Shown: positions 129 through 33,344, counted from the stretch's first letter. The stretch is 64,000 nucleotides of DNA from IMGVR_UViG_3300042359_000853:62001-126000; one strand, 5' to 3'. Notes: generated by a model from the sequence alone, not told the origin. Translations and numbers: made by a program.

Positions 129-141
129 ATTCTTGTTTTTT

Positions 142-447: not shown

Positions 448-450
448 ATT

Positions 451-1065: not shown

Positions 1066-1079
1066 AATTTTATCTAATT

Positions 1080-1754
1080 TTATTTTTGTAAGATTTGTCT
1101 GTATTTCTCTTTTTCATCATTTAAGATTTTCTTAACTTCATCTTTGCCTAAAAAACATATATTTTTGTGATCTTCTTTGAATATCATAGCTGATTTTTCA
1201 CAAATTTCTGTTTTCACTAAACATTCCTCAATTGTTTTACCCCAAGTTATTATGCCGTGATTCTTGAGTAAGATTATTTTGGGATCTGTATTATGTATCT
1301 CAACAAACTTATCAAATTCCTTTTCTATTGCTTGACATAATTCATCACCTGGGTGAAAATAATTAACCAAACATGATTTCATTCCATTGAAAACAACTTG
1401 ATCAGGAAAAAATCTATAGTTAGCAAAAGTAGAAGATAAGTTTCTACATAAAATTCGCATAGTATGTGATGGGTGTGTATGTGCCACAAAGTTACATCCT
1501 GTTTTTCTCAAAATTAGAGAATGAAAAGGTGCCTCCATACTAGCTCTTAATTCTGAGTTTCTTGGAATGCAATCCCAGGAGCATTCTACTAAATCTTTAT
1601 CTTTTAATGTCTCCATCCTTCTACCAGAAGCTTTAATCAAAAAAGTTTCATCAGAAAATCTTGCCGATACATTGCCCTCATATCCTACAACAAACGGGCT
1701 ATGACTCTTTGCTAATTTCAAAAGACTAGTTTTAATATTATTTTTATCTACCAT
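1080..1754 (-). CDS. class II aldolase/adducin-family protein
   Basis: EGNVSAR, IKASG, SME.PFH, HTHP, LLKNHG metal-binding motifs. Confidence 0.88.
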   Translation of the reverse strand: MVDKNNIKTSLLKLAKSHSPFVVGYEGNVSARFSDETFLIKASGRRMETLKDKDLVECSWDCIPRNSELRASMEAPFHSLILRKTGCNFVAHTHPSHTMRILCRNLSSTFANYRFFPDQVVFNGMKSCLVNYFHPGDELCQAIEKEFDKFVEIHNTDPKIILLKNHGIITWGKTIEECLVKTEICEKSAMIFKEDHKNICFLGKDEVKKILNDEKEKYRQILQK

Positions 1755-2506
1755 CTTGATAATCTGAAACTTCTATTTGAATTAAATTTAAAATTTTGAC
1801 AAATTCTTAAATATTCATCCTGTAAATAACCTTCTAGACCATTATTACTGAGTGGCAGAAGACCACCTCCGTGTGTTATATGTATAAACTGATAGAAAGG
1901 AAGACATTTGAAATATCCACATTCAACCGGAGTAGGGCAATACATTTTGTATATGGAGAATTTTTGTGAATATACTTGGGTCTCGAATTTTTCGATTGTT
2001 CTATAATTCTCGTTTGGGAAATTTGACATAATATCCATCAACGTCTCAAACTTCCAGATAGAGGGATTCACGTTATAAATAGCATGATTTGGATCATTCT
2101 GTTTTGTAAGATAAAAATCTAAATCATTCCACTTCAGATGATAATCTGATGAGTTCGAATGATAATATTGAAGATCAATTCGATCTAAATTATTATCTCT
2201 TGCAAAATCAAATAGTCCTTTTAACATAGTTACATCTTTAGATACGAGAATATCAATATCGTGAGTTAAAAGAATGTAATCTTCCTGGAATGATGTTTCT
2301 TTAAGGGATAGAATTCTAGAAGCATAGGGAAGTGAATCATCATAAAAAAGTATTTCTTTATAGCCCTCGGTAATATTTTGAGGCAAATTGCTAGTTTTGT
2401 TGATAAATAATTTTTTATCTGATATATCTCGAAGATAATGTGTCTGAATATTTAGAATATCTAAATATTCAGTATGTGAATAAATAATCCAATTCATATT
2501 ATGCAA
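1748..2506 (-). CDS. glycosyltransferase-like protein (GT-A fold); start may be ATG 2497
   Basis: HDID DxD-like motif, YNVNPSIW motif, cluster context. Confidence 0.55.
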   Translation of the reverse strand: MHNMNWIIYSHTEYLDILNIQTHYLRDISDKKLFINKTSNLPQNITEGYKEILFYDDSLPYASRILSLKETSFQEDYILLTHDIDILVSKDVTMLKGLFDFARDNNLDRIDLQYYHSNSSDYHLKWNDLDFYLTKQNDPNHAIYNVNPSIWKFETLMDIMSNFPNENYRTIEKFETQVYSQKFSIYKMYCPTPVECGYFKCLPFYQFIHITHGGGLLPLSNNGLEGYLQDEYLRICQNFKFNSNRSFRLSRW

Positions 2507-3953
2507 TCTTTTTTCCGAGGAAAAGAATTACAATCACTACGTAATCATAATAATTACCAAGATTGAATCTATCATCATCATTTATAGGGTAATATTGTAG
2601 AAAAGTTACCTTATTATGATTTTTATCCGAAGAATCAATTTTGAAAGGTATATTTCTAGCTGAAAAGTAGCTTATGATTTCTAGAAGAGTATATTTTTTG
2701 TGTATAAAAAGATTCAAGATCACATTCGGTAAAATTTCAGGATAGTTCAAATCAATCTGATCCTCAGTAGTAAAATTAATTATTAAATCCGATAAGTCTC
2801 TTTGTGGTAGAACATATTTGTAATAGTCATCTTTTCTAAGTGAGATCTGCTCAAGAACTTTTTCTTTAGTATATCCCCGTTCAAGAACATCTCTTTTGAT
2901 TTTCCAAAGTTGCTTCAATCTTGTATCAGTATCCACAAAAATTTTTAGATCATAAACCCCATCATTTCTACCTAAGAGACTATGTAGACCACAAACAATC
3001 AAGTTATCTGATGTTTCTATTTCTTGTTTTTCTGTAAATTTACCTGTTGAATGATCATAATTTACATGGTAAATACTTTTTCCGATTTTTAGATCAAAAA
3101 TATCATCACTCATTTTTGTAATATAGTTAGCTTCTGGATTGAGATGTGTGAATTTTTTCCAATTATCGTCGCCTCTCTCCCACTTATGATACCTATCACA
3201 TTCTAGCATAAATGAATTTGAAAAATAAGTTTTTAGAATATTTCCCAAAGTTGTTTTACCAGAACCAGAATCACCAGCAATAGCAAAAACATTACAGAGT
3301 GAAAGTATCACATTATACTCCATATCTACCAACTTTTTAGGCATGTTTGATGACATAAAATAGTTGAACAAAATAGTTTCTGGTGTGTATCCGTTTTTCT
3401 GGGTTAGAGAATCTAGATTATGATAAATATCAAAATATTTGTTCATGGATTCTCCATCACCAAAAGCAAAAATATCACAAAGATGGTCGTCACCTGAATT
3501 TTCTAATTTTGACTTATCAATTATACTCTTAGAAGGTATATACACTAAATTATTTTCTATGCTATCAGGAAAAACATCCTCTGATATAATATTCAAGTCG
3601 GGTCTGTATTTTATAATAAGATCATATTTGAATTTTATTTCATTAATTTTTCTTAATTCATTTAATTTATAATATTTTATCCAATGATTATAAAGATTGT
3701 TTTTCTTTTTATTTTTTGAAAAATAGTAGTTATCCTCATAGATGAGAGAAACGGGATTCAAGATTTCTTCGAGCCATTTCAAATCCTCCAACTCATGATT
3801 CAAATTGAAGTATTTATCTTCTGTAGATTCATTTTTTGTAATATGAATGTAAATATCAACTTTGTCAAATTTGTCTAAAATTTTAGTTTTTATATTCGGA
3901 ATATTTATTTTGAAACTTCTTAAATATCCAGAAATCAAAAGAGCTACTCTCAT
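2499..3953 (-). CDS. fusion of an N-terminal glycosyltransferase-like domain and a phosphoribulokinase/uridine kinase-like P-loop kinase
   Basis: N-part RVALLISGYLR...YDLIIKYRPDL...DIFAFG; C-part AGDSGSGKTT, DRYHKWER, HLNPEAN, YDHSTGKF, KIKRD..ERGY. Confidence 0.8.
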   Translation of the reverse strand: MRVALLISGYLRSFKINIPNIKTKILDKFDKVDIYIHITKNESTEDKYFNLNHELEDLKWLEEILNPVSLIYEDNYYFSKNKKKNNLYNHWIKYYKLNELRKINEIKFKYDLIIKYRPDLNIISEDVFPDSIENNLVYIPSKSIIDKSKLENSGDDHLCDIFAFGDGESMNKYFDIYHNLDSLTQKNGYTPETILFNYFMSSNMPKKLVDMEYNVILSLCNVFAIAGDSGSGKTTLGNILKTYFSNSFMLECDRYHKWERGDDNWKKFTHLNPEANYITKMSDDIFDLKIGKSIYHVNYDHSTGKFTEKQEIETSDNLIVCGLHSLLGRNDGVYDLKIFVDTDTRLKQLWKIKRDVLERGYTKEKVLEQISLRKDDYYKYVLPQRDLSDLIINFTTEDQIDLNYPEILPNVILNLFIHKKYTLLEIISYFSARNIPFKIDSSDKNHNKVTFLQYYPINDDDRFNLGNYYDYVVIVILFLGKKIA

Positions 3954-3969
3954 TTGTTGTAAGTTATTT

Positions 3970-4824
3970 TTATCTAAAATTATTTATTATTTTCCAATTG
4001 CTAAGCTCGATGGGTTCTAGTTTATGAAAATTAGAATTGTGTGCTAAAATTAGACCTCCAAAACGGTTAATAAGTGGATGTAGAAATATCGGTTTAGATT
4101 TGAACAAGCTATATTTAGCATCAAGCAAGTAACAAAAAGCCGCCCAAACAGAATCTATAAAATGTATTTCACTTGATTTTTCTAAAATTTTTATTGTGTG
4201 AAAAATATTATCGGCCAGTCCATGTAAATTGACATATTTTTTTGAATTATCAAAGTTATGTATTTGTAAAGGAACACCAAAATTACGGGTTGGATCTGAA
4301 TGTACTAGAATATAATTATCGGTGCCAATTTTGGAAATAAAATCGTTATAGACTTCTTCTTCTTTCTCTAAATCTCTTGTAATATTAAAGCAATTTATTT
4401 TTTCAACAAAATCTATATCATAATGTGTATATAAACCTTTGATTGGATGATCGGTCTGCCATAGTTTTGGATAAATGTCTTTGTATTTATCATCTGGTCT
4501 TCTATACCAATCAGACCAACCGTGGATAAGTAAATCATAATCTTCTTTATCCACACCGTTTTCTTGCCAGATATCATACAAACTTTTTTTACCAGTTTTC
4601 TCCAAATCGTGATCAGATTCAAGAATTTTTAAAATTTCGACATTTTCTAAATCCTTCAGTGCGAACTGAACATTCTCATACATTTTATCGATTACGGTAA
4701 CTTTTACGAGATCATATTTTTTAGCGTAGTATCCCGGTAGAGATAGTAGATTTATTGTATCAGTCCAAGCTTGATGTGAATATATTATACCTTTTTTCAT
4801 TGTATCTATTTTATTATTGTCCAA
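3970..4824 (-). CDS. glycosyltransferase-like protein (GT-B/GT9-like), paralog of 4806-5573
   Basis: HQAWTD, RDLEKE, YILVH, EIHFIDSVWA, shared with the neighbouring ORF. Confidence 0.55.
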   Translation of the reverse strand: MDNNKIDTMKKGIIYSHQAWTDTINLLSLPGYYAKKYDLVKVTVIDKMYENVQFALKDLENVEILKILESDHDLEKTGKKSLYDIWQENGVDKEDYDLLIHGWSDWYRRPDDKYKDIYPKLWQTDHPIKGLYTHYDIDFVEKINCFNITRDLEKEEEVYNDFISKIGTDNYILVHSDPTRNFGVPLQIHNFDNSKKYVNLHGLADNIFHTIKILEKSSEIHFIDSVWAAFCYLLDAKYSLFKSKPIFLHPLINRFGGLILAHNSNFHKLEPIELSNWKIINNFR

Positions 4825-5573
4825 TTTTCAGGATGAATTGGTTCAATAGTTTGATCTGTTTGATAATCTAATAAACCACCTTGTCTTAATTTGAATGGAT
4901 ATATAAATATAGGAATATCAGTAAATAATCTATATTTACAATCTAGATGATAAATTATTGAAGCCCAGACTGAATCAACTAAATGAATTTGTTCGGATTT
5001 CTGTAAAATTTTAATGAAACTAAAAAAATTTGTAGTAATCTTGTTCAAATTTATGCTCTTTTTATTATTGATTACGTGATTTGGAAGTTTTATTCCAGTA
5101 TCACCACCTGGTGTATGATCATCTTCGTGATACAGAATATAGTCACTCCTCTTAGATTCAATAAAATTTTGGTAAGTTGTATTCTCTAACTCTAAATCTC
5201 TTTTTAAAGAGAAGTATTCTATTTTAGCTCTAAAATCAATACCATATGACTGATAAAATTTTTTCACAAAGAAATCTGAACTCGAGTCAAATCTAAACCT
5301 GAATTGATCTGACCTGAATCGATCGTGTTGCCCATGAAAAAGAATATCATATCCAAGCTGGATATTAAAGTGGTAATTATCGAGATCTTTTTTATTTTGA
5401 TATATTGCCGAGACGTTATCAAATTGACTCAGATAGAAATCTATAAATGGTCTCGAATCCTCACGAATTAAAACATCTAAATGGGCGTATCTTTTTGAAT
5501 AATAACCCACTAAACCTAAGCAATTTACGATATCAGTCCAACCTTGATGTGTAAAAAAAATACCTCTCTTCAA
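4806..5573 (-). CDS. glycosyltransferase-like protein (GT-B/GT9-like), paralog of 3970-4824
   Basis: HQGWTD, RDLELE, YILYH, QIHLVDSVWA; TTG start. Confidence 0.55.
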   Translation of the reverse strand: MKRGIFFTHQGWTDIVNCLGLVGYYSKRYAHLDVLIREDSRPFIDFYLSQFDNVSAIYQNKKDLDNYHFNIQLGYDILFHGQHDRFRSDQFRFRFDSSSDFFVKKFYQSYGIDFRAKIEYFSLKRDLELENTTYQNFIESKRSDYILYHEDDHTPGGDTGIKLPNHVINNKKSINLNKITTNFFSFIKILQKSEQIHLVDSVWASIIYHLDCKYRLFTDIPIFIYPFKLRQGGLLDYQTDQTIEPIHPENWTIIK

Positions 5574-6790
5574 ATTAAATTATTGTAAAATTTTATAAAA
5601 TCCTCCAAATCAAAACTCCACTCAGAATTTAGACCTTCGTCTAAGGGTGTAGCATCCTCTTTGAGAACTTTTATTTCTTCAAATGTATCATCGTTGTTCC
5701 ATCCGGATATAGGTGATTTCGAAAAATTAACAACTAAATATTTTTTTTGGACTTCTTTAATCTCACCAATTCTATTACCCCACTTTATTCTCATGTATCT
5801 TTTCCATATGTTAGATTCAGTATTTAAAGAATTCAAGAAATAGTTTGTAGTTCCACCAGAAAAACTAAATATAAATCTAGAATTTATTGATAAAAAATGT
5901 GGAGAACATATGCATATACTTTTACATTCAGAGTTAGCAAACAAAAGGTTACATAATCCACCACCGATGGCGCCTATAACCATTTCAGATCCCATCATCA
6001 TTCCTATTTTGTCGTTGGTAGAAAGTTTTTCGGTAAAAACTTCAGTAAATCCTTCACTTTCTAAAAATTTAACTAGTTCATCCTCAATTATAAGTTTTCT
6101 TCTCTGAGTATAATTTGTTCCAATATTAGAGTAGTCACCGTGAATCCAGCTTCTTCTGGATATGTAAATTTTTTTTGGATAAGAATTTATATCAACTAGA
6201 TTACTAACAACATTTTTTATTTGTTCATATAATTTGAAAATTTCTTGTCTGGGTGGTAAGTTAGAATTGTGTCCATGTGTATAGGAATCTGAAATGTAAA
6301 TTTTTTTGTATAATATACCTCGATCTAGAGAAACTAAATTTTCTTTCTCAATTTCAAGAATTTTCAAAAACTCCCAAAAAAAGGGATAAAAATCACGGCT
6401 ACCGGGAAAACTAACTAATATCTTTTCAACTAAGTTTTCTTTTTTGAGTTGCTTATAAGTTATTAAATAGGGTAGTGTGTCGTAAACAAAATGGTAGTAA
6501 TTATCAGAGTTATAAACAAAATAAAAAACAGGTTCTTCAAATGTCGATATTAATCTAACCTCAGTAGAGATCTCAATAGGTTGTTCCGAATAATCACCAA
6601 GTGACATAACTTTCTCGAAATAAGGATTATATAAATTATCACCAGACCCAAGAATAATACCTGGATAAATACTTGTATCACTAGCTACGAATACATCTTC
6701 TAATAGATAGGCATCTATTTTTCTCCCATTTTCGTCTGTATCAAAAATAGGCATTCTATTTTTGTGGTTTTCTAGTGTTTGTATATTCAT
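5570..6790 (-). CDS. GT61 (DUF563)-family glycosyltransferase
   Basis: NYYHFVYDTLP, KIYISRR, RR.L..E.EL...L...GF..V..E.LS, VIGAIGGGLCNLLF. Confidence 0.8.
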   Translation of the reverse strand: MNIQTLENHKNRMPIFDTDENGRKIDAYLLEDVFVASDTSIYPGIILGSGDNLYNPYFEKVMSLGDYSEQPIEISTEVRLISTFEEPVFYFVYNSDNYYHFVYDTLPYLITYKQLKKENLVEKILVSFPGSRDFYPFFWEFLKILEIEKENLVSLDRGILYKKIYISDSYTHGHNSNLPPRQEIFKLYEQIKNVVSNLVDINSYPKKIYISRRSWIHGDYSNIGTNYTQRRKLIIEDELVKFLESEGFTEVFTEKLSTNDKIGMMMGSEMVIGAIGGGLCNLLFANSECKSICICSPHFLSINSRFIFSFSGGTTNYFLNSLNTESNIWKRYMRIKWGNRIGEIKEVQKKYLVVNFSKSPISGWNNDDTFEEIKVLKEDATPLDEGLNSEWSFDLEDFIKFYNNLI

Positions 6791-6792
6791 GT

Positions 6793-7458
6793 TTAGTATA
6801 AAGTCGAGTTTACTCTATTTAATATACTCTGTGGTATTGGTTGGTGTGGTGCGGCAGAGACCTGGGAATCCCATTTATATTTACACATAATTTTATCTAG
6901 AACGAGTTGTGTTTTTGCTCTGGTTGATGCCTCGGCTATAAAAACAGCGTCTTCTCCCCAACTTATATTTTCAAAGGATATTTGTTTAATAAAATCAGTT
7001 CGCCAAGCACACCACTGCCAAGGCGGTCTATTACACGGCACAGGATTTCCAGAGGTATCTTTTTGAAGCTGATCGAATGGAATAACTTTGTTGTGCTCTA
7101 AATTAGTTCTGACTAACCATTTTTTTCCATCCACTGTCGCTTCTTGATTGTAACAAATTACATCAACGTCGAGATCCGTGGTTATACTATTTCTGAGTGT
7201 TTCTATGAAATCATCTACTACATCATCGTCATCATCAATAACACAAGTATATTGGCCTTGTGCAAGAGAAAATAAAAGATTTTTTTTTCTACCAATAGAC
7301 ATGACTTTATTGTCCATTAAACTGATGACTTCAATATCTTTTGAATCACCTATCTGATCCAGTAATTTTTTATAGAATGGGCTTAGATAGTTATTCATTC
7401 TTTCTGGAATACTTGGTATTCCAATTGTGAGTTTAATGGTTTGTGCTGAATTCATCAT
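6793..7458 (-). CDS. GT2-like glycosyltransferase
   Basis: LTIGIPSIPER, SIG.K.N.L...AQGQY.C.IDDDD, WGED. Confidence 0.8.
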   Translation of the reverse strand: MMNSAQTIKLTIGIPSIPERMNNYLSPFYKKLLDQIGDSKDIEVISLMDNKVMSIGRKKNLLFSLAQGQYTCVIDDDDDVVDDFIETLRNSITTDLDVDVICYNQEATVDGKKWLVRTNLEHNKVIPFDQLQKDTSGNPVPCNRPPWQWCAWRTDFIKQISFENISWGEDAVFIAEASTRAKTQLVLDKIMCKYKWDSQVSAAPHQPIPQSILNRVNSTLY

Positions 7459-8158
7459 AAATCTTCAAATTTATATTTTCTTTTTTTAAGAAATCTTGTA
7501 GAAAAACTTTGCCGTAGTAATTTACATCAAGAATACTACCGTCTCCCCAGTAAGCTTGGCCCACAAAGTGTTCGTCACTTCTTGGACCAGACGAACTTGG
7601 GAAAGGCCTTTTTTCGAAAAACTCATCATGAACCAATGATTCATTTTTGACTAGTGGGTATATTACACTACCAAGAAAGTCTTGGTCTATACCGTGTCTG
7701 TTATCTTTAGGAAACGTCTCAATCAATTTATCTATTTGAGTAAGTATTCCGGATTTAGCACCCCACATACCACCCAGTATAGGAACTGAATGATATCTAT
7801 GATCTCTCATAATATGAAATTGTTCTCTAGAATTTATCCATTCATCTACCGCCAATTTTTCCCTCAATAAAAGTCTGCTATCAACATCACGACTGATCAT
7901 TACTTCTACTTGAGGATCAGACGCAGCTAAAAATCTCCAAAACATACCAGTCCAATCACAAACCTGCGAAATTTCTATGAGTTCTACGTTTTTTCTGATT
8001 GATAGATCTTCTTTTAATCTCGTTGGTGTATTGTGACCTAAATAGTAACGACATATCCAGTCGGGGTAGTAAATTTGTGCTAAATCCGCATTTTGTAGTG
8101 CACCACCGGTATATCGATAGTTATTACCCCACAAACTAAAACATATTACCTTTTTCAC
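7433..8158 (-). CDS. putative glycosyltransferase (GT-A type seen in large DNA viruses)
   Basis: FSLWG..Y..GA..NA, MFWRF, SRDVDSR, HIMRDH..H..PILGGMWG, DQDFL; GTG start. Confidence 0.65.
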   Translation of the reverse strand: MKKVICFSLWGNNYRYTGGALQNADLAQIYYPDWICRYYLGHNTPTRLKEDLSIRKNVELIEISQVCDWTGMFWRFLAASDPQVEVMISRDVDSRLLLREKLAVDEWINSREQFHIMRDHRYHSVPILGGMWGAKSGILTQIDKLIETFPKDNRHGIDQDFLGSVIYPLVKNESLVHDEFFEKRPFPSSSGPRSDEHFVGQAYWGDGSILDVNYYGKVFLQDFLKKENINLKIYDEFSTNH

Positions 8159-8943
8159 TTTATACTATCAAACTTTTTGAAATTGACCTTATTTCTGAAG
8201 AAAAAACTTTCATAGGGATACTGCCTTTCATCAGAAAGAACTCTACGATGTGGCCTACCGTATAGTCCTGAAATTGTAGCTGAAGGATCAAAAGTGTATT
8301 TAGTAATAGTGAACTCTTGGTTAAACTTTGGTTTCTCAGCGTATCCTATTTCAGAATTATTAATTATCATGGTAGGATCTTTTTGACCAGTTTGATGAAC
8401 ATTCACGATAATTGGAAGATTCAGTCCTGGTGGGTAGTTCCCGAACTTATCGATATATCTCCAAACGAAGTCGCCATCTTCTTCACCATGTAGTAGGAAC
8501 CTTTCATCAAAATAATTCATATCATCTAAAAGTTTTTTAGTAATAACAAAATGACTGAATGAGTTATTGATAGTAAAACATTCCTGACCTGGGTTGGATG
8601 ATATAACACCATTCAAGATTTCTACAAAGTTTTTGCCTTCGTCAAAAAGTAGATCATCATTGAGAATAAGATTATATTCGGTAACAGAGTTAATAACGAG
8701 AGTGTTCCACAACTTAGCCAGAGCTCTAAACTCTTGATGAAAAATGGGAAATATGTTGTTATATTCTAAACATAGTTTAAGAACTCCTTTTCTATATTCT
8801 TCACTAAAAGGAGTTTCTATTTCTCCATTAATTGCTAAGTTTATGATTATATCCGGATCACATCTCTTGAGATATTTTATCATTCTAGTGAGTGATTCGA
8901 GACGCCTTTCGAATGTTGTTATTCCTATACTAAAGTTTGTCAT
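8155..8943 (-). CDS. GT2-like glycosyltransferase
   Basis: SIGITTF, LILNDD, YFDERF..GEEDGD. Confidence 0.75.
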   Translation of the reverse strand: MTNFSIGITTFERRLESLTRMIKYLKRCDPDIIINLAINGEIETPFSEEYRKGVLKLCLEYNNIFPIFHQEFRALAKLWNTLVINSVTEYNLILNDDLLFDEGKNFVEILNGVISSNPGQECFTINNSFSHFVITKKLLDDMNYFDERFLLHGEEDGDFVWRYIDKFGNYPPGLNLPIIVNVHQTGQKDPTMIINNSEIGYAEKPKFNQEFTITKYTFDPSATISGLYGRPHRRVLSDERQYPYESFFFRNKVNFKKFDSIK

Positions 8944-9782
8944 TCAAAAATTCGGTAGAGAAACTCTCTAATGGTTTCTATTTTATTCGCGACGGGTGGT
9001 TCGTTATTTACAAAAGGTCTTTCACTAAGAACTTCGAAATACTTTTCCCGGTTACGATCTAGTTCTATAATATATTCTACAGCAGATGAAAAGTTTGGAA
9101 AATTTCTTACATCAATAAAAGATTTCGGGTTAAACTCTTTATTAATATCTGTGTTTCCAAAATAAATCGGAATAGTATGTGATGATAGAGCTTGTGGAAG
9201 TTTTTCTGTAGTATAGTGCTCGTTATAACCTCTATGTGCGTCGTTCTCAAAACAAATATTAAACTTGTAATGTCTGAGAAACTCAAGCTTATCTCCTACG
9301 AGTCTTCCCAGATTGTTCATAAATCTACCACCCGAATCAACCGTCTTGTATTTTGAGAGAAGATTGAAAAACTCGTTTCTCGGACCAGATGCGCCGTTGC
9401 TTACTACAAAAGAACAAAACTTTCTATCAAAAAGAGATTCTTGTGGGTCTGGTCTTTGTGAAAGTTCATAATAACCAGGATACAAAAGATAGTGTGGTAG
9501 TCTATAGTTTCTCGGATCTTCTGAATAATCAAAAGAAAAAGCCCAATCACATCCCCTTAGAGGATCTACATCTCGAAAAATTGGTGATATATTCTCACCG
9601 GTATAAAATATTTTTTTGCAACTATATCGGGTATGGTTACTACCAAAAACCGAATAAAACAAAAAATCTGGATTTGGTGAAATTTCTACCGAAAAACCTT
9701 CACGAAGAAGATTAGTAAAGTAGTTATCGGATTTATCAAACCCAGGCCAAAAATCTATAAAATCTATTTTTAATGACCTCAT
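8940..9782 (-). CDS. GT10-family alpha-1,3-fucosyltransferase-like protein
   Basis: DFWPGF, YTGEN, RLP.Y, FCSFVVSN, VDSGG, YKFNICFEN, YTTEKL, IPIYFG. Confidence 0.88.
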   Translation of the reverse strand: MRSLKIDFIDFWPGFDKSDNYFTNLLREGFSVEISPNPDFLFYSVFGSNHTRYSCKKIFYTGENISPIFRDVDPLRGCDWAFSFDYSEDPRNYRLPHYLLYPGYYELSQRPDPQESLFDRKFCSFVVSNGASGPRNEFFNLLSKYKTVDSGGRFMNNLGRLVGDKLEFLRHYKFNICFENDAHRGYNEHYTTEKLPQALSSHTIPIYFGNTDINKEFNPKSFIDVRNFPNFSSAVEYIIELDRNREKYFEVLSERPFVNNEPPVANKIETIREFLYRIFE

Positions 9783-10474
9783 ACCTTTAATCTTTCCTCA
9801 AGTGGCATTGAGCTTCTTCTAATCCAAGTTTCTTTGTCCCTAGACATATTGTTATAGTAAGATTGATCGTTGGAATCTCCCTGGCGCCTTCCGTTAGACC
9901 AATGATGATGAACAAAGATATAATCTTTGTCCTTTTCTCTATTATCTACTACAAGTCCCATTTCAAAGAGATTTTTATAAAGTTCAGCATCTGAATAAAG
10001 ATGTGTGTATTGTGGATGATAGATAACCAGATTGTTATCTACTAAACACGAATAGGTCATAATCGGTATAGAAAAAACTGGATGTTCCATATTTGAGAAA
10101 TCTAGTTTTTGATATCCATCATTGACCATCAGAGCTCCTTTTTGTGGTAAACTCGCTACTACATACACATCCCAGTTCTCGGGTGGTGTGAAATCATCAG
10201 ATCCGAAAACAACAATATCTTCTGGATCAGCCTTGAGTGTTGAAGACAACTTATATGAAGGTAAGCAAACACCTTTATAGGGTGGTTGATAAACCGTAAG
10301 TGTATATTCTAGACTATTTCTTGTAAAGTAAGCATCTAAAAACTCACGTTCGGCCTCTGTTGAGACCAAAACGTGAGTTTTAACAGATGATTTATTACTG
10401 GCGGCTTTCATCCATATAGAATGGACATTTGGAAAGGAGTTGGTTCTTATAGTGCACCAAAGTAGATGTATCAT
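9779..10474 (-). CDS. GT2-like glycosyltransferase
   Basis: GSDDF.PP.NWD, VNDG, IYHP.Y..LYSD.EL, HHHW. Confidence 0.65.
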   Translation of the reverse strand: MIHLLWCTIRTNSFPNVHSIWMKAASNKSSVKTHVLVSTEAEREFLDAYFTRNSLEYTLTVYQPPYKGVCLPSYKLSSTLKADPEDIVVFGSDDFTPPENWDVYVVASLPQKGALMVNDGYQKLDFSNMEHPVFSIPIMTYSCLVDNNLVIYHPQYTHLYSDAELYKNLFEMGLVVDNREKDKDYIFVHHHWSNGRRQGDSNDQSYYNNMSRDKETWIRRSSMPLEERLKV

Positions 10475-12600
10475 GATTGTGGAGATTCGGGATCGGCTTT
10501 CTGCCTTTTAGATTTTTTTCCATTTTTAATGGTAACCACTGATTTTTCTTCTTCACTGAGATAATCTACAATCAGGGTTGAACCTTTTGCTGGTTCGGTT
10601 TCTAGAATAAACTCAGTGAGTTCATCTTCTATCCAAGTTTGGATTGCTCTTTTCAGAGGTCTAGCTCCAAACTTAGGATCCCATCCAACAACCATAAGAT
10701 GACTCTTCATATCTGGTGAAACTTCGAGAACATACTCGATATCAAGAACCCGAGATGAAACTTTTTCAAGTTCGATTTCGATGATCTTTTCAATTGATTG
10801 TTCATCTAGAGAGTTGAACATTACAATAGAATCAATACGATTGATAAACTCTGGTGGAAACTTCTTCTTGATCTCTCTTTGGATAACAGCATCCTGATCT
10901 TTTTTAGAAGTCTCGGATTTCGCCTTGGTCTCGAAACCAAGACCGGTTCCAAACTCTTTTAGCTGCCTTACTCCGACATTTGAGGTCATAATAATGATGC
11001 AGTTTTTAAGATTCACCTTCCTGCCGTGAGAATCTGTAAGGTGCCCCTCGTCAAAAGCTTGTAAGAAAAGATTAAATACATCGGTATGTGCTTTTTCTAT
11101 TTCATCAAGTAGAATAACCGAGTAAGGTTTTCTTCTAATCTGATCTAGAATAGTCGCATCTTCGTATCCAACATATCCAGCTGATGATCCGATAATCCTA
11201 GTAATGGAAATTTTTTCCATAAACTCACTCATATCGATACGAACAAGATTATCCTCTGACTCGAACATATGTTTAGCAAGTGTTTTCGCAAGGTGTGTTT
11301 TACCAGTTCCCGTATCACCAGCGAATAGGAATACTCCAAGTGGTCGATTGGGATCTTTAAGACCGACACGACCTCTTTGGATACTTTTCACAACTGCTCT
11401 CACCGCTTCTTCTTGACCTACAACGGTTTGAGAAAGAACTTGAGTCATCTGAGAGAGTTTCTTGTTTTCAGATTGAGAAATCTTCTGAACAGGAACCCCA
11501 GACATCATCGAAACAACTTCGGCAACATGTGATTCATCGACAACTTTCTTATTCATAAGTTCGTCTTCTTCCCACTTGCGTCTTTCGATTTCAAGTTGAG
11601 TTTGTAGCTGTTTTTCAAGATCACGAAGTTTTGCGGCCTCTTCATATCTTTGACCTTTTACTACCTCGTTCTTCTTTTCTTTAATTTGCATTATTTTCTC
11701 TTCACAATCTGTGATTTCTTTGGGAACCACAACGTTTGAGATATGAACTTTTGCTCCAGCTTCATCCAAAGCATCTACCGCTTTGTCAGGAAGGTGTTTA
11801 TCAGTGATATAACGGGAAGTTAAATACACACAAGCTTGAATAGCCTCTGGTGTATAGACAACATTATGATAGCTCTCGTATCGAGGAACAATCTTTTCGA
11901 TAATCTGAATAGTTTCATCTTCGGTTGTAGGAAGAACCGTAATCTTCTGAAAACGACGCTCTAAAGCTCCATCTTTTTCGATATGCTTTCGGTATTCTTC
12001 TTGTGTTGTAGCTCCGATGATGCGAAGATCTCCACGAGAAAGTGCTGGTTTGAACATATTCGAAGCATCCATCGAACCAGATGATCCACCAGTTCCTATC
12101 ATCGTATGGATTTCATCGATAAAAAGAATAATGTCGGGATCTTTTTCGATTTCAGCAAGAAGTGATTTGACTCTTTCTTCGAATTGACCTCTGTATTTTG
12201 TTCCCGCGACAAGTGAAGCAAGATCGAGCATCCAAATTCTTTTACTAAAAAGAGCCCGTGGAACTTTTCTGTTGACAATCCTCAGAGCTAGACCATCTAC
12301 TACCGAGGTTTTACCAACACCGGGTTCTCCAAGAAGAATAGGATTATTCTTTTTTCTTCGTGAAAGAATCTGAGACATTCTGATAATCTCTTTTTCACGG
12401 CCGATGATCGGATCAACTTTACCCTCTTCGGCCATACGGGTAATATCTTTCCCGTAGTTTTCGAGCACTGGAGTTTTTGATTTAGAATCATTCTTTTTTA
12501 TCGGGTTTTTTTGTTCTTCATCATCGTCGTCATCTGAAACAGAAGCAACGATTTGACTCTTCCAAAGTTCGTATTCATAATCTGGTGTCATATTTTTCAT
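10471..12600 (-). CDS. clpC: ClpC-type AAA+ ATPase lacking the N-terminal Clp repeat domain
   Basis: GEPGVGKT, LFIDEIH, UVR-like M-domain (QRYEEAAKLRD), GDTGTGKT, LLDEIEKAH, LGF ClpP-binding loop, GARPLKR. Confidence 0.92.
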   Translation of the reverse strand: MKNMTPDYEYELWKSQIVASVSDDDDDEEQKNPIKKNDSKSKTPVLENYGKDITRMAEEGKVDPIIGREKEIIRMSQILSRRKKNNPILLGEPGVGKTSVVDGLALRIVNRKVPRALFSKRIWMLDLASLVAGTKYRGQFEERVKSLLAEIEKDPDIILFIDEIHTMIGTGGSSGSMDASNMFKPALSRGDLRIIGATTQEEYRKHIEKDGALERRFQKITVLPTTEDETIQIIEKIVPRYESYHNVVYTPEAIQACVYLTSRYITDKHLPDKAVDALDEAGAKVHISNVVVPKEITDCEEKIMQIKEKKNEVVKGQRYEEAAKLRDLEKQLQTQLEIERRKWEEDELMNKKVVDESHVAEVVSMMSGVPVQKISQSENKKLSQMTQVLSQTVVGQEEAVRAVVKSIQRGRVGLKDPNRPLGVFLFAGDTGTGKTHLAKTLAKHMFESEDNLVRIDMSEFMEKISITRIIGSSAGYVGYEDATILDQIRRKPYSVILLDEIEKAHTDVFNLFLQAFDEGHLTDSHGRKVNLKNCIIIMTSNVGVRQLKEFGTGLGFETKAKSETSKKDQDAVIQREIKKKFPPEFINRIDSIVMFNSLDEQSIEKIIEIELEKVSSRVLDIEYVLEVSPDMKSHLMVVGWDPKFGARPLKRAIQTWIEDELTEFILETEPAKGSTLIVDYLSEEEKSVVTIKNGKKSKRQKADPESPQS

Positions 12601-14488: not shown

Positions 14489-14875
14489 ATGAATATAAAA
14501 GCAGATTATACACTACCAGTTACCTTAACAGACGAAAGTTTTGATAGTTTTATTGAAACGGGTGTTCGTGTGGTTTATGTAAAAGCTTCTTGGTGTGGTC
14601 CTTGTCGTATGATGGCTCCTGTCATCGATGATCTAGCCAGAGAGTTTGGTGGAGAGGATAAAGTTATATTTGGTAAAGTTGATGCCGATGATTGTGTGGA
14701 GACTTGCCTGAGTTTGAAGGTTAGGAGTGTTCCTACTATTGTTATCTATAAAGATGGAGAATTGAAAGATAAGAAGACAGGAGTGGTTGCAAAACCTGTT
14801 CTGATTGAAATGTTTAAGAGTTTGATGAATGATAACTCTACGGGTGATATTGATACCGGTTCTGAAGATTTTTAA
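14489..14875 (+). CDS. trxA: thioredoxin
   Basis: WCGPC active site, VRSVPT cis-Pro loop. Confidence 0.92.
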   Translation: MNIKADYTLPVTLTDESFDSFIETGVRVVYVKASWCGPCRMMAPVIDDLAREFGGEDKVIFGKVDADDCVETCLSLKVRSVPTIVIYKDGELKDKKTGVVAKPVLIEMFKSLMNDNSTGDIDTGSEDF

Positions 14876-14893: not shown

Positions 14894-15343
14894 ATGAAAA
14901 AGTTAGAGGGTGGATTGATAATTAAAAATAAGAAGGCTTATTTTGATTATCATATAGAAGAAGAATATACAGCAGGGATACAACTCTTTGGGTCAGAAGT
15001 TAAATCTATTCGTAATTCGGATATACAAATTCGTGATTCTTTTATAGAGGTAAGAAATGGTGAGTGTTTTCTTGTAAACACTCATATTAAATCTTCTTGT
15101 TCTGGAGGATTTTTTTCACATGAAGTTTCTAGAGTAAGAAAGTTATTGTTGAAAAAAAGGGAGATCATCAAAATTCATAAGTTGACAAGTCTAAAGGGTC
15201 TGACCTGTGTGTTACTTGAGTTGTATTGGCATAATCACATAATTAAGTGTAGAATCGGAGTAGCAAAGGGTAAAAAGAATTATGACAAGAGACAATCTGA
15301 GAAAGATATGGAAATAGATCGATATATGAAATCGTTTCTGTAA
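14894..15343 (+). CDS. smpB: SsrA-binding protein SmpB
   Basis: NKKAYFDY.IEE.Y.AGI.L.GSEVKSIR, RKLLL.KREI, AKGKK.YDKR. Confidence 0.93.
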   Translation: MKKLEGGLIIKNKKAYFDYHIEEEYTAGIQLFGSEVKSIRNSDIQIRDSFIEVRNGECFLVNTHIKSSCSGGFFSHEVSRVRKLLLKKREIIKIHKLTSLKGLTCVLLELYWHNHIIKCRIGVAKGKKNYDKRQSEKDMEIDRYMKSFL

Positions 15344-15371: not shown

Positions 15372-15551
15372 TTAATTGTTGTCTGGTTCCAGGTCATACT
15401 CCGGTTTTTCTATGAATACCCCGTATTCAATGATGTTGATTCTGTAGTATATAACGTCATTTTTGAGAGATATTTCTTCTACTACTCCTCTCAGTGGGTC
15501 AGGACTAAGGGTTTTAACTTTATCACCCAGATTGAATTTTGGCGTATTCAT
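15372..15551 (-). CDS. 59-aa small protein, possibly SH3/KOW-like; absent from the ORF track
   Basis: Own translation MNTPKFNLGDKVKTLSPDPLRGVVEEISLKNDVIYYRINIIEYGVFIEKPEYDLEPDNN; fills the gap between smpB and the LamG ORF. Confidence 0.7.
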   Translation of the reverse strand: MNTPKFNLGDKVKTLSPDPLRGVVEEISLKNDVIYYRINIIEYGVFIEKPEYDLEPDNN

Positions 15552-15556
15552 TTTTT

Positions 15557-16345
15557 TTAAGTTATATTAAATTGTGTTTTCAAAATATTATAATTCGATA
15601 ATACTTCAGCGTCAGTTAGAGTTCTATTGTAAATATGTATTGAGTATAAATTAGTTTCTCCAATAAAACCATCAAAACAGGAACCAGGACCTCTACCTGT
15701 CATTAAATCACTTCCACCTCCCGACGGAGTTGAATTGACAGATACACCGGTTTTTGTTGGTGATTGTAGAACACCATTGATATATGCTTTGGCGTTGTCC
15801 ACACCCGATTTACAACTTCCAACAATATAAAGGTCTTGGCCAATCCAGTTTGTTGATGCCAATCCGAAACCAACACCTCCACCAGCTCCATCAAAGAAAT
15901 CAAGTGCCAAATTTGGCGCCACACTCACATTATTGGAAGTGTTATACATATAAAAACTGAACTTTCTAGTCAGTCCGGTGCAAAAATCCAAATTTATAAG
16001 TGATGACCATCTGAAACCAGCATTTCCGTGTGGGATACTTATTTGTCTTAAGAATATACATACTGTTATTTCACTTGCACTACGTGCTAAAGGAGCACCA
16101 GAACCCCACGTGATGTAAGGTGTGTTTATTGTCGCGTTATTAAATTGTAGTGATTTTGTTGAACCACTATTATAGGTAACATTTCCAGAGTTGATTATTG
16201 TCCCCGTATAAGTATTAGGCGATAAATCAAATACATCAGCACCTGACCCTGGATAACTTGAACTGTTGGATATATTAGTGTAAAGTACCAAACCAGTTTG
16301 GTCTATATCCTGAGTCACAACAGTAGGTGTAATGGTAGGTGTCAT
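15557..16345 (-). CDS. LamG/concanavalin-A-like domain; in frame with, and probably the C-terminus of, 16385-20359
   Basis: GLVLY....SSSYPGSG....DLS, AKAYINGV, IYNRTLTDAEVLSNY; separated from the upstream ORF by one TAA and 13 in-frame repeat codons. Confidence 0.8.
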   Translation of the reverse strand: MTPTITPTVVTQDIDQTGLVLYTNISNSSSYPGSGADVFDLSPNTYTGTIINSGNVTYNSGSTKSLQFNNATINTPYITWGSGAPLARSASEITVCIFLRQISIPHGNAGFRWSSLINLDFCTGLTRKFSFYMYNTSNNVSVAPNLALDFFDGAGGGVGFGLASTNWIGQDLYIVGSCKSGVDNAKAYINGVLQSPTKTGVSVNSTPSGGGSDLMTGRGPGSCFDGFIGETNLYSIHIYNRTLTDAEVLSNYNILKTQFNIT

Positions 16346-17610
16346 CGTAGGAGTTTCGGTTGGTGTTTCGGTATTGGTTGGTGTTTAAGTTGGGGTTTCG
16401 GTAGGAGTATCAGTGTTTGTTGGTGTAGGTGTTTCAGTTGGAGTTTCGGTTGGAGTCCTCGTAGGAGTTTCGGTTGGTGTTTCGGTATTGGTTGGTGTTT
16501 GAGTTGGTGTTTCGGTAGGAGTATCAGTATTTGTTGGTGTAGATGTTTCAGTAGGTGTCTGTGTTGGTGTTTGAGTTGGTGTTTCGGTAGGAGTATCAGT
16601 ATTTGTTGGTGTAGATGTTTCGGTAGGTGTTTCGGTAGGGGTTTCGGTAGGGGTTTCGGTATTGGTTGGTGTTTCGATAGGAGTATCAGTATTTGTTGGT
16701 GTAGGTGTTTCAGTAGGAGTTTCGGTAGGTGTTTCGGTAGGGGTTTCGGTAGGGGTTTCGGTATTGGTTGGTGTTTCGATAGGAGTATCAGTATTTGTTG
16801 GTGTAGGTGTTTCAGTAGGAGTTTCGGTTGGTGTTTCGGTATTGGTTGGTGTTTGAGTTGGTGTTTCTGTAGGAGTATCAGTATTTGTTGGTGTAGGTGT
16901 TTCAGTTGGGGTTTTGGTAGGTGTCTCCGTAGGAGTTTCGGTTGGTGTTTCGGTATTGGTTGGTGTTTGAGTTGGTGTTTCGGTAGGAGTATCGGTATTT
17001 GTTGGTGTAGATGTTTCAGTAGGTGTCTGTGTTGGTGTTTCAGTTGGTGTTTCTGTAGGAGTATCGGTATTTGTCGGTGTAGGTGTTTCGGTAGGTGTTT
17101 CGGTAGGGGTTTCGGTAGGTGTTTCGGTATTGGTTGGTGTTTGAGTTGGTGTTTCGATAGGAGTATCGGTATTTGTCGGTGTAGATGTTTCAGTAGGAGT
17201 TTCGGTTGGTGTTTCGGTATTGGTTGGTGTTTGAGTTGGTGTTTCGGTAGGAGTATCAGTATTTGTTGGTGTAGGTGTTTCAGTTGGGGTTTTGGTTGGT
17301 GTCTCCGTAGTAGTTTCGGTTGGGGTCTGAGTATTCGTTGGTGTGTTAGATGGTGTTTGTGTATTTGTAGGAGTATTTGTAGGTGTTTCAGTTGGAGTCT
17401 GAGTATTTGTAGGAGTATTTGTAGGTGTTTCAGTTGGAGTCTGAGTATTTGTTGGTGTAGGTGTTTCAGTTGGGGTTTCAGGTGGTGACGCACCCGGTGT
17501 TTCGGTATTTGTTGGTGTAGGTGTTTCAGTAGGTGTCTGTGTTGGTGTTTGAGTTGGTGTTTCGGTAGGAGTGTCAGTAATTGTTGGTGTAGGTGTTGAT
17601 GGAATCGTTG
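16320..17610 (-). repeat. coding tandem repeat, 12-nt units ([16 protein letters not shown]) with higher-order units; mucin-like tract of about 400 aa
   Basis: Plus strand shows repeated GTTGGTGTTTCG/GTAGGTGTTTCA-type units. Confidence 0.95.
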
Positions 17611-20359
17611 TGGTCGAAGTAGTAGTAGTAGATAGAGTGAATGGTGTGTATCCGAACACGTTCATGGATGGATAAGTTGTTGTAGTTGTTGTTGTTTGAT
17701 ATTGTCCTATATTATTATCCTGACAGAATTGACAGAAATTCGATGCCAGACTATATGTTTCTCCTATAGTAGTCACACCCAAACAATCAAGTTCTGGTAT
17801 AGTTGGGTTACTATATTGCCAGCAGAAACCACCTTGTGTGAAACCCCATCCAGAGGCACTTATATACCCAGGTATCAGTATACTATAAGTGTTAGTCGAT
17901 GTATTCCCACATATTTCTGCTGTATACCTGTAAGGATATGTGTAATTACAAATATTTGGTATAAGTTCTCCCGAGTATGTGAAATTCTCGGATTTAATCT
18001 CTGATTCTTTTATTATTTTCCAATAGTCAAAATGTCCTTTTATGAAACCATAAGTAGCACTCAGAATATCGGCAGGAACAATATAAGATGGGATCTTAAT
18101 TACTTTTCTAGACTGTTGTGCGAAACAAGGCAAGAGACATTGTTCTACTGTAAAAAATCTGAATTCGGAGCTATCTAGTAATATTGAAAATTTCCAATCA
18201 TCAAAATAATTATCATTTAACAGATTCAAGGTTTGTATTGATTGACCACTCACATCTATTGAATCAACTTTAGAAAGAGCGAATTTGATTCCTTGAAAGA
18301 GGGTAAGATTTGGAATATCACTCCTACCTGTGTTGAATTTAGACCATTTCCTCGATCCCTGAACATTTATTAGATTGAAACTGAACGTTTTTCCGAAAAA
18401 ATCTACAAAATAGTCCGAAGATGAAGAAAAATAGCTTCCAATATCAAAATAAAAATTCCTATCTGAATCCGAGACATGCAAACTATGAAAAGAATATGAA
18501 TGTCCGTCGGCATTTATGGTATAGAAATAATCTAAGTTTCGGTCACTTCTCGTTACGATTGAGTTAAAACTATTAGGACTCCTATTAAACTCATCAGATA
18601 ACAAGGAATTGTTTAGAAGATATGGATAATCGTTTGTGTTTTGAGAGTTCTTCCATCCCCACTTCAAGAAGATTGGATTCTTTCTCCAAATATCGGTGAG
18701 ATCTGCCCCGTCGATCTTAAATGTCTCCAAATTAGATGTGTATTCAGAAGAAGAGGGTAGATAGGTAATTTCGTTTGATAGATTGAACCTCTCAAAATCT
18801 TTCGGGTTCGACTTGTCTTTAAAATCCCTAAGATAGAATTTGGGCTCATCAGTTTTAATATTGAGGGAACTTTCAAATTCGTATTGGTATCTAGAATAGA
18901 CAGTATCTATAACATCGATATCGAAATCCTTTATATCGAGAAATTTGAACTTGTATATTTTGAATATTTTTGGTTTTCCATTTTCATCTAAAAGATCGAT
19001 CTTGGTTATGCCTGACTCTTCTGGAAAATTTATATAATACTCCATTATATCATTTGTGAATCTAAATCCACCATCAGATATAATATAATAGGAACCGCTA
19101 GAATTTTTATGGATTCTATAGAAAGAATCGTCAATACTGATACCCCATATATCGACTGATGAGAAATTATCAATATTAATGTTTTGTTCTGGTAATTGTG
19201 GGTCACATGGATACTCGGTATTTCGTAGTTTCAATTCATTATTTGTGTTAACAGTCCAGATATTCGTATTTAAACTACTTGATGTTAAACCTGAAAAGGA
19301 AGTCGCCGCAATAATTTTCCAGTTCTGAATTTCATTTGAAATAACTCTTTCCACTTTATAAAAATCACCTCGTATTTGAATCCATGTGTAATCTCTTATC
19401 CGCCACTCCTCAAGAAATGGAGATGATGAACTAGTTGAGGTAAGAAAATTATTTTCATCAATTAATATGTTTGGTGACAAATTTTGCGGTTGGTAAAAAC
19501 TTATCCCTTTCACTTCTTCGATGTCTTCAAAATAAAAACCATAATACCGGTTGAGAGTCCATCTACGAAGTGTATTCTTTGTAGCTGGCTCATCATCAAA
19601 CAGAAAACTCAAATTTAGAATGTTAGGATGGATAATTCCTGAGTTGGCCCACCCTTCAAAAACCATTTTCTGAAAATCGAAATATGTTTGCTCATTAGAA
19701 AGAAAACTATTGAGTATAGAAGACTTTGTGGTAAATAAACCAGTTGAAAGATCTATACCAGTCCAATAAGAAAATTCAGAATCTCTGAAATCTATCCAAA
19801 GACTCGACGTTGGAAACTGGTCATTATCTTCATAATTCTTCTTTAACCATTCTGATATAGAATTGTTACCTTTTAGATCAAAACACTTTACAAACTTCAA
19901 TTTATCTAAAATCTGTTCTCGAAAATTATTTCTTGTTATTTCAACTAAACCTGGATCATCGACTCTAAATATAACAAAACACTTTGGGATACCGTTTCTT
20001 TCAATCCATAACGGAGAAAAGAACTCGAATTCTTCTAAGTAATCTTTATTATTACCTATATTTGATGAACCACTAAAATACAAAGAGTCAATTTGATTTT
20101 CAAAGTTTTGAAACATCAAACTTTTATCACCATCAAATTTGATCTTGAAAATTAATTCTTTTGGGAAACTCCTGAAATAAGTTGCGTAAATTTCACCTAT
20201 ATAATCTGATGGTGAAACGGGCCTCTTCTTGAAGCTAGAACTGGAAAGTATCGGATCCGAATCTATCGAATCTAAAGATATCTTTGATTCAGAATCTACG
20301 ACGATTTTAACATTAGCACTAAGACCAACATTTGTTCTTAAAAGGGAGAAACTTTTCAT
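16385..20359 (-). CDS. large predicted virion protein: globular N-terminal region, Cys-containing segment and Thr/Pro mucin-like tract
   Basis: 1324-aa ORF, no signal peptide, ATATATA motif upstream, lies among structural-type genes. Confidence 0.7.
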
Positions 20360-20414
20360 TTTTACCTTCGTTTATATATAAATAGTGAAGGTTGTCATCT
20401 AGGAACGATATCAA

Positions 20415-23741: not shown

Positions 23742-23984
23742 ATGACCTTATCAAGAATAGTTATACCTAAAATGTCACTCACCCGGGAACAAAAAGACAA
23801 GTATTTTGTTGGTAGTGGATATGAAGATGAAGAACTCAACTTCATCGATGACAAACCCTGGATTCTTTACCTCGATGACAACGAGACGAGATTATTTTTT
23901 GAGCACGGTGCTACAAAAGAAATGAGACTATCACTTAAAAAACAAATACTACAAAAATTAAACAAAATAAAATGGAACTATTAG
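23742..23984 (+). CDS. hypothetical protein; start reassigned to ATG 23742
   Basis: The ORF-track TTG start lies inside the promoter; ATG 23742 follows an A-rich leader. Confidence 0.6.
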   Translation: MTLSRIVIPKMSLTREQKDKYFVGSGYEDEELNFIDDKPWILYLDDNETRLFFEHGATKEMRLSLKKQILQKLNKIKWNY

Positions 23985-24592
23985 AAGAAATCACAAGCTT
24001 TAACGAACACGAAGAACTATTCAAGGAAAGAACCGGCAATAATTTTTCTTTTTACTACAAAAAGTATTACCCAAAATTGATCTACTACGCTAATAAGATG
24101 TGTAAAGATCAACAAAAAGCAGAAGACATCACTTTCGAGTCTTTTATGACTGCTTTTAAAAAGATTGATAAGTATGAAAGAGAGAAATCACAATTCTCCA
24201 CCTGGCTTTTTACTATTGCTAGAAATATCATACTACAAGATATGAAAAATATCAAAAAAGAAATTTCCATCGACACACAAATCGATGAAGAAGGAACTAC
24301 ACTTAAAGATTTTATCCAATATGAGCACGAAGATCCGATGCTACAAGAAATTCATCAGATGAAAGCTAAGATTATGGTTCAAAAAATTAACTCACTCAAA
24401 GAACCTTACAAAACTGTTATTGAAATGCGTGAAATAAAAAGAATGGCTTACAAAGATATTGCCGACCTTCTTGGCAAAAACCTTAGCACTATTAAATCTC
24501 AGATTAGGAATGGCCGAGCAATACTTATGAAAGAAACAAAGTTTGAATTTGCTAAACTCGAACAAGAAGTAGATACCAAATCGTATTTCTAA
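23972..24592 (+). CDS. sigma-70-family (ECF-like) RNA polymerase sigma factor
   Basis: Region 2 AEDI..ESF..AF..I..Y....SQFSTWLFTIARN; region 4 HTH YKDIADLLGKNLSTIKSQI.NGR. Confidence 0.9.
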   Translation: MELLEEITSFNEHEELFKERTGNNFSFYYKKYYPKLIYYANKMCKDQQKAEDITFESFMTAFKKIDKYEREKSQFSTWLFTIARNIILQDMKNIKKEISIDTQIDEEGTTLKDFIQYEHEDPMLQEIHQMKAKIMVQKINSLKEPYKTVIEMREIKRMAYKDIADLLGKNLSTIKSQIRNGRAILMKETKFEFAKLEQEVDTKSYF

Positions 24593-32624: not shown

Positions 32625-33344
32625 TTAAGATCCTTGCTCACTACGAAATTTATCGTATCGGTTGGTAAGTTCAATAAGAAACTTATTTCTCACGATATCT
32701 TCGTTGTTAAATCGGAACTCTACTAGATCTTGCATACCACTGGTCATATCAATAAAATCAAGGTAACCAGAATCTCTTCGCTTTACATCGTATTGAGAAG
32801 TATCTCCCATCATCACGGCTTTTGAGTCTTTACCAAGACGAGTAGCCCAGAGCATTAGAGTTGCTAAGTTAGAGTTTTGACACTCATCTAGTAGCATTAT
32901 ACAATTATCAAAAGTTGTTCCTCTCATATAGGCTAGAGGCTCAAAAATAATCTCTTCGCTTGAAAATAACCCATCTATCATTTTTTGATCTAAGATTTTA
33001 CAAAAGTTAGAGTAGTAAGATTTTACGTAAGGATCGATTTTATCTTTCACATCACCTGGAAGAAGACCAAGTGGATGACCACTTTCAACTGTGGGTTTAG
33101 TGATGATGATTTGTTCTATTTTTTTATCGGCTAAAAGAGATAAAGATGTATAGCAAGTCGAAAAGGTCTTTGATGTTCCAGCAGGACCGTGAACTACCGT
33201 TAGGATATTATTACGAATAGATTTGAATAGTTGTAACTGTTTTGGTGATAGCTCAACGTTGTTTGAGTTTTGAAAAAGTTCTCTTGTGAGTTGACCTTTC
33301 TTTTGTTGTTTGACGGGTTCGGTTACTTTGCTTTGGGTTCTCAA
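32625..33344 (-). CDS. phoH: PhoH-family ATPase
   Basis: GPAGTSKT, LGLLPGD, PLAYMRG.TF, LDECQN, TRLG, GD.SQ.D, DIVRN. Confidence 0.9.
   Translation of the reverse strand: MRTQSKVTEPVKQQKKGQLTRELFQNSNNVELSPKQLQLFKSIRNNILTVVHGPAGTSKTFSTCYTSLSLLADKKIEQIIITKPTVESGHPLGLLPGDVKDKIDPYVKSYYSNFCKILDQKMIDGLFSSEEIIFEPLAYMRGTTFDNCIMLLDECQNSNLATLMLWATRLGKDSKAVMMGDTSQYDVKRRDSGYLDFIDMTSGMQDLVEFRFNNEDIVRNKFLIELTNRYDKFRSEQGS

Follow-up and report, generated by a model that had tools for sequence, protein, structure and literature searches.

The locus lies on the minus strand of a 64-kb window, by which we mean the whole 64,000-nucleotide stretch analysed (bases 8402-72401, reverse strand, of a 95,110-bp IMG/VR virus record). 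An earlier reading of the DNA, made from the sequence alone, had placed two open reading frames (ORFs) here in one shared frame, 16385..20359 (minus strand, 1324 aa) and 15557..16345 (minus strand, 262 aa). This proved correct: translation from 20359 to 15557 gives 1601 positions with a single internal stop. The features of the locus are as follows.

17720..20359, minus strand: conserved N-terminal body, residues 1-880 of the 1324-aa ORF
16388..17719, minus strand: Thr-run and Pro/Thr-rich (PT) repeat stalk, residues 881-1324; the tandem repeats are imperfect, with periods of 12 to 468 nt
16457..16459, minus strand: variant AGG (Arg) codon in the penultimate repeat unit, where siblings have GAG or GAA
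16385..16387, minus strand: TAA stop, followed by A
16346..16384, minus strand: 13 repeat codons between the stop and the next ATG
16343..16345, minus strand: ATG opening the LamG ORF, a variant repeat codon that is GAG, GAA or AGG in siblings
15557..16345, minus strand: "LamG-A", the 262-aa ORF, predicted to be a LamG/ConA-like jelly-roll domain
15372..15551, minus strand: ORF59, 59 aa, directly downstream of LamG-A, with which it travels

The TAA at 16387-16385 ends the 1324-aa ORF, and the 13 codons that follow it still belong to the Thr/Pro/Glu/Asn repeat. When the 63 nt that have the TAA at their centre are compared with the rest of the array, five sibling copies are seen in phase, each with 3-6 mismatches, and all five carry CAA at the corresponding position (17233-17231, 17143-17141, 16969-16967, 16855-16853 and 16501-16499). 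The repeat runs on across the stop with up to 60/63 identity to these units. This places the stop inside a repeat unit, so that it is neither the original end of the gene nor a chance juxtaposition. Because the stop and the LamG start both stand at variant repeat positions, both are point variants within the last stalk unit, and the TAA probably arose there from CAA by a C-to-T change. Two further ORFs over the array, 16298-17488 (plus strand, 396 aa) and 16342-17493 (minus strand, 383 aa), are low-complexity by-products of the repeat and not genes. In PHROG the stalk gave only a low-complexity match, to phrog_15511.

The earlier reading had allowed for a consensus error at the TAA. The array is hard to assemble: it ends one IMG/VR contig (L010, which stops inside it at window position 16617), and 100-N gaps lie within it in several ENA scaffolds (among L016-L023). 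However, the TAA and the 60 nt upstream of the ATG were the same in all of 12 contigs, each from a different sample. These twelve contigs comprise three JGI and nine ENA records and, judged by record names, include SPAdes-style NODE scaffolds and one k141-type contig. In all of them the TAA stands 42 nt before the LamG ATG. As the stop is only 42 nt from unique sequence, short reads anchor the site. In another sample, a 227.6-kb IMG/VR contig matches 18.7 kb of the window at 100% identity, the whole array and the TAA included. The nearby AGG codon had been taken as a sign that the region is error-prone. The odd codon is indeed there, but it was reproduced in an independent assembly (P0001) and does not indicate error. 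An assembly or consensus error is thus effectively excluded. The TAA is real and, at the consensus level, fixed in the sampled near-clonal population; such fixation is part of what the earlier reading had named as refuting its proposal.

In a large assembly collection, 38 blocks index the exact 262-aa ORF and 41 further blocks a one-residue variant, A87V. Among the TAA-bearing contigs this ORF is intact in all 12 and varies by one substitution in 789 nt (A87V). Their unique flanks, beyond the array, depart from the window by 0-0.3%, so that the contigs represent one near-clonal population sampled many times; there is thus too little divergence to test selection on the LamG ORF. A CAA allele was not found at the consensus level in any contig or protein cluster. 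The 90% cluster of LamG-A holds no member longer than 262 aa and none that is fused, and a scan of metagenome contigs gave no further alleles of the locus but only relatives at 84% identity.

The stalk itself does vary. The upstream ORF is 1066, 1290 or 1324 aa long in the twelve contigs, the length variants are clean in-frame block deletions, and a 102-nt deletion in the array is common to two samples. These variants indicate that recombination or collapse in the array does occur. The sequence-only reading had proposed that recombination among repeat units could switch the tip on or off. In such a reversible switch, TAA would be exchanged for CAA and back by gene conversion or by unequal crossing-over between stalk units, and tip-ON and tip-OFF subpopulations would arise. 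Five potential CAA donor units match the TAA unit at 57-60 of 63 nt, and the clean in-frame block differences would fit active recombination, but part of the length variation may be assembly collapse, as the N-gaps and the contig break in the array suggest. Every length variant keeps the TAA, and the 12 contig consensuses gave no case of coexisting ON and OFF alleles. The fused or longer LamG-A protein expected of an ON state is missing from the 90% cluster. Moreover, the TAA lies in the last unit, next to unique sequence, and a point nonsense codon is not a hypermutable tract; we found no tract that could toggle frame or expression, since the changes in the array are in frame and the block is a point substitution. 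The locus resembles bacterial contingency loci and phase-variable adhesins in having a repetitive tract with repeat-number polymorphism in a surface-recognition gene. It differs from them in three ways: changes in repeat number are all in frame and toggle no expression, a point nonsense codon makes up the OFF state, and the twelve contigs contained no ON allele. Phase variation is therefore unsupported at the consensus level, and we regard a switch as quite unlikely.

A search with the N-terminal 880 aa recovered close relatives of two kinds. In P0122 and P0123 (three ENA assemblies; P0122 was compared as protein) the body is 96% identical to that of the window (845/880). In P0002 and P0127 it is 68% identical and syntenic, with the same gene order as in the window: sigma factor, 1062-aa gene, locus gene, SmpB, thioredoxin and ClpB-like gene. 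All four carry single ORFs of 1303-1316 aa that consist of body, PT stalk and a C-terminal Laminin_G_3 domain. The TAA is absent from both the 96% and the 68% relatives and is thus not a conserved feature of the gene. These relatives show that the ancestral gene encoded one polypeptide in which body, stalk and LamG domain were fused. The claim that a nonsense codon severs the LamG domain from its own stalk is borne out by the CAA codons of the sibling units and by the fusion in every close relative.

The tips of these relatives are of another type than that of the window. Their domain, here called LamG-B, passes the Pfam threshold (57.9 bits in P0002). LamG-A and LamG-B show 23% identity in an alignment, and BLAST gives only a local match of 34 residues between them. 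The two lineages, with bodies at 68% and 96% identity to that of the window, nevertheless have LamG-B domains that are 98% identical. This near-identity indicates a recent exchange of the tip between diverged megaphages. LamG-A has relatives of its own. Two metagenome contigs carry it at 84% identity; jumbo-phage contigs of 113-127 kb, rated 41-46% complete by CheckV, and a shorter one of 20.7 kb carry it at 82%; further proteins have it at 74% and 50%. In these relatives of 50-84% identity the domain is always the C-terminal domain of a longer ORF, and a PT linker precedes it in all but one, where it directly follows the N-domain. Distant body orthologues (about 40-44% identity) have CBM_5_12-like C-termini instead of LamG. 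Tip cassettes have thus been exchanged between lineages, and the gene consists of a conserved body with an exchangeable distal binding module.

ORF59 appears to belong to such a cassette. Its homologues, with 44-53% amino acid identity, lie directly downstream of LamG genes in L011 (3186-3350), L012, L005 (5125-5268) and L006, and it is absent from the LamG-B relatives. Neither ORF59 nor the small N-domains of the LamG-A relatives gave a family match. ORF59 may be a companion or assembly factor of the tip cassette.

The assignment of LamG-A to the LamG domains was examined by profile, fold and pairwise comparison. Against Pfam Laminin_G_3 (PF13385) it scores 21.5 bits (E = 2.9e-4), below the gathering cut-off of 27.6. 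In the AF2 model (pLDDT 77.6, pTM 0.82) the domain is all-beta except for a helix at the C-terminus. At E<=1e-3 the model had 324 matches in the PDB by Foldseek, and the best 50 of the 324 are ConA-like lectin domains. The best matches (E about 1e-9, TM about 0.6, 10-16% identity) are with lectin-like domains from sialidases of trypanosomes and with the jelly-roll at the N-terminus of clostridial neurotoxin binding domains. A phmmer search aligned LamG-A with six PF13385-bearing proteins (E from 4.7e-6 to 7.3e-4) that have invariant motifs in common with it. LamG-A is therefore like PF13385 and the Concanavalin clan in its predicted jelly-roll fold and in its homology to family members, and unlike them in its sub-threshold Pfam score and its low identity to solved structures. 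By the model, the resemblance is to a generic carbohydrate-binding fold, and nothing in it points to a toxin function. The tip would be expected to bind carbohydrate.

About 730 aa of the body are common to megaphages of 634-735 kb, and its first 280 or so residues are also common to Lak phages and to ORF-295 of Tenacibaculum phage PTm1. The body gave no Pfam or PHROG family match. In its AF2 model residues 11-475 are confident, and with this part Foldseek found no PDB match at E<=1e-3 (best E 0.011). The wide VIA comparison with known folds gave a best Z of 3.7, and scores in an ESM-Atlas feature search were below 0.8 and uninformative. Thus Pfam, PHROG, Foldseek and VIA reveal no homology or fold likeness to a known fibre or baseplate protein. 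The only positional hint of a virion role is that PTm1 ORF-295 is located between neck and portal genes; the neighbours of the gene in the window encode a sigma factor, SmpB, thioredoxin and ClpB. The architecture, with its conserved anchor and its variable and exchangeable distal binding domain, is that of a fibre or receptor-binding protein, and we infer a role as virion fibre or adhesin in which the tip would bind a receptor.

In phage fibres such as T-even gp37/gp38 and lambda-type stf/tfa, a conserved N-terminal anchor carries exchanged C-terminal tips, and a small accessory gene often follows. The present gene is similar in its conserved body and varied C-terminus (LamG-A, LamG-B or CBM_5_12-like), in tips that are common to divergent bodies, and in the small ORF that co-travels with the tip. 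It differs in having no homology to a known fibre family or fold, in its stalk, a low-complexity PT sequence of about 440 aa and not a trimeric beta-helix or coiled coil, and in a tip that is cut off by a nonsense codon; its place in the virion is putative. A layout of domain, long PT linker (at least 200 aa) and small C-terminal domain is also found in the proteins encoded at 36049-38166 and 54455-57787 (both minus strand), and this modular design is recurrent in the genome. The second of these has an N-terminal region of about 500 aa that is protease-like by eye only, DUF285 repeats and a small C-terminal domain.

The source of the window is an uncultured megaphage that uses the standard genetic code. 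With the 95,110-bp record put at 17% completeness by CheckV, the whole genome should be about 0.55 Mb; the G+C content is about 33%. In a tblastn search the large ORF found its best phage relatives in "uncultured phage" genomes of 634-735 kb (LR745206 and LR756500-LR756504), with farther matches in Prevotella Lak phages and Tenacibaculum phage PTm1. Other genes recognised in the window are listed below.

2499-3953: PRK/uridine-kinase-like gene
5570-6790: GT61 glycosyltransferase
8940-9782: fucosyltransferase-like GT10 (Pfam marks on related loci)
10471-12600: ClpB-like double AAA+ protein
14489-14875, plus strand: thioredoxin, convergent with the LamG ORF
14894-15343, plus strand: SmpB, convergent with the LamG ORF
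23972-24592, plus strand: sigma-factor-like gene
32625-33344, minus strand: PhoH-like gene
38517-40220, plus strand: SbcC/Rad50-like gene
49489-50583, minus strand: peptidase-like gene

The last four are typical huge-phage cargo. Window 1-12600 forms a glycan/chaperone gene cluster, and its glycosyltransferases could conceivably act on the Thr-rich stalks. SmpB, here encoded by the phage, is the partner of tmRNA in ribosome rescue; because its synteny and that of thioredoxin are kept in relatives with an intact gene, neither is linked to the stop. An ADP-ribosyltransferase match in the upstream 1062-aa protein was below threshold (E = 0.017) and was treated as noise.

Under translation table 11, stop-to-stop ORFs of at least 100 aa span 96.5% of the 95-kb record. 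The terminators of 38 well-defined window genes are TAA in 21, TGA in 10 and TAG in 7, and the TAA-A context seen at the LamG stop is found at 11 of the 21 TAA stops, the commonest terminator context in this phage. An alternative genetic code is ruled out by this coverage together with the use of TAA to end 21 of 38 genes.

If the TAA were programmed to be leaky, or if it were decoded by an ochre suppressor from the 60% or so of the genome that lies beyond the sampled records, a major tipless and a minor tip-bearing isoform would be made. The frame downstream of the stop is preserved, only about 17-39% of the genome is in hand, and stop-codon recoding with suppressor tRNAs has been described in the related Lak megaphage clades (bioRxiv 10.1101/2021.08.26.457843). 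The similarity to this large-phage recoding (TAG to Gln, TGA to Trp) is that the phage belongs to the same broad group and that the stop falls at a Gln position. The differences are that phage recoding described so far concerns TAG and TGA and not TAA, that TAA is here the main terminator, and that a single site is affected in a genome already dense in standard-code genes. A reassigned codon would stand inside many genes in frame and would seldom serve as terminator, and TAA does not show this pattern. Searches of six records with ARAGORN and RF00005, namely the 95-kb record and five others of 110-228 kb from related phages (two of the five are from this phage itself), detected no tRNA gene. 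The Q-beta A1 readthrough protein is also similar, in that a stop is followed by an in-frame extension domain with a possible role in host recognition. The UGA of Q-beta is leaky and conserved, whereas the TAA-A here is missing from the 96% and 68% relatives. Readthrough is in our judgement very unlikely; if it did take place, no earlier tailed phage would be known to control isoforms through readthrough or suppression of TAA.

We then considered how the two ORFs might be expressed. The following motif lies 14 nt upstream of the ATG of the 1324-aa gene.

20373..20380, no strand assigned: TATATATA, promoter-like motif

This 8-mer occurs nine times in the window (at 20373, 23622, 25461, 26319, 38469, 48498, 49456, 54428 and 60678) against 3.2 expected, each time between genes and shortly before a start codon. 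Of the nine genes that it precedes, two are the 1324-aa ORF and the gene upstream of it. This distribution suggests a promoter-like element of the megaphage and very short leaders. The gene leaders of the phage have a mean A+T content of 80% (sd 10%) and no Shine-Dalgarno motif. The 30 nt upstream of the LamG ATG are PT-coding and have 53% A+T; only one gene has a lower value, and that gene overlaps its own predecessor. There is no copy of TATATATA upstream of the LamG ATG, and segment 16346..16384 contains no start codon, Shine-Dalgarno-like motif or AT-rich leader. Since the LamG ATG has neither the motif nor an AT-rich leader and follows a TAA-A stop, the expected main product of the locus is the tipless 1324-aa protein.

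Reinitiation by post-termination ribosomes that scan over tens of nucleotides is established in bacteria, and the gap from stop to start is here only 39 nt. This raises the alternative of a functional gene fission, in which the stop and the new ATG have split the fusion gene and LamG is made as a separate subunit, non-covalently bound or soluble. The LamG ORF is intact in every copy and opens with a complete domain, its ATG lying 18 residues before the first core strand. This observation speaks against a simple loss of the tip. The phage also has overlapping, coupled genes whose upstream regions are not AT-rich (for example at 9779..10474), and stand-alone PF13385 proteins of 223-271 aa exist, although they are distant from LamG-A. 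On the other hand, every relative of at least 50% identity is fused, the LamG start has no expression signal of the kind seen at other genes of the phage, a free tip would have no evident way to attach to the stalk, and the population is too clonal to reveal purifying selection after a split. Fission is a tentative alternative that we consider unlikely.

The reading that we prefer, with a probability of roughly 0.7, is that an exchangeable tip cassette was acquired and then detached by a fixed nonsense mutation. The locus would be one modular gene with a body of about 880 aa, a Pro/Thr repeat stalk of about 440 aa and an exchangeable C-terminal LamG (ConA-like lectin) tip. In the lineage of the window the tip would be a cassette of LamG-A and ORF59, common to unrelated jumbo phages and joined via the PT stalk. 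The C-to-T change in the last stalk unit would then have become fixed. The main product would be the tipless protein of body and stalk, and free LamG would be made at most at a low level, by ribosomes that reinitiate at the downstream ATG. Such an outcome suggests that loss of the tip is tolerated or favoured. The truncation may be recent and neutral, or it may have been selected, for example if the tip no longer fits the host. What the locus shows, on the evidence so far, is a nonsense mutation of the ordinary kind, fixed in a modular gene, and such events are familiar. If sequence reads showed a revertant subpopulation, the locus would instead become a natural example of host-range toggling.

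For annotation, these results mean that the 262-aa and 1324-aa "genes" are the halves of one modular protein and that the split is biological and not an artefact. Because its lectin-like domain is swapped through PT-linker junctions, the gene is a candidate for determining host recognition in a megaphage group without cultured members. That the truncation is fixed suggests that, on its current host, the phage can do without the tip or that selection disfavours it. The exchange of lectin-tip cassettes between huge-phage lineages is a by-product of this analysis that is more interesting than the stop itself.
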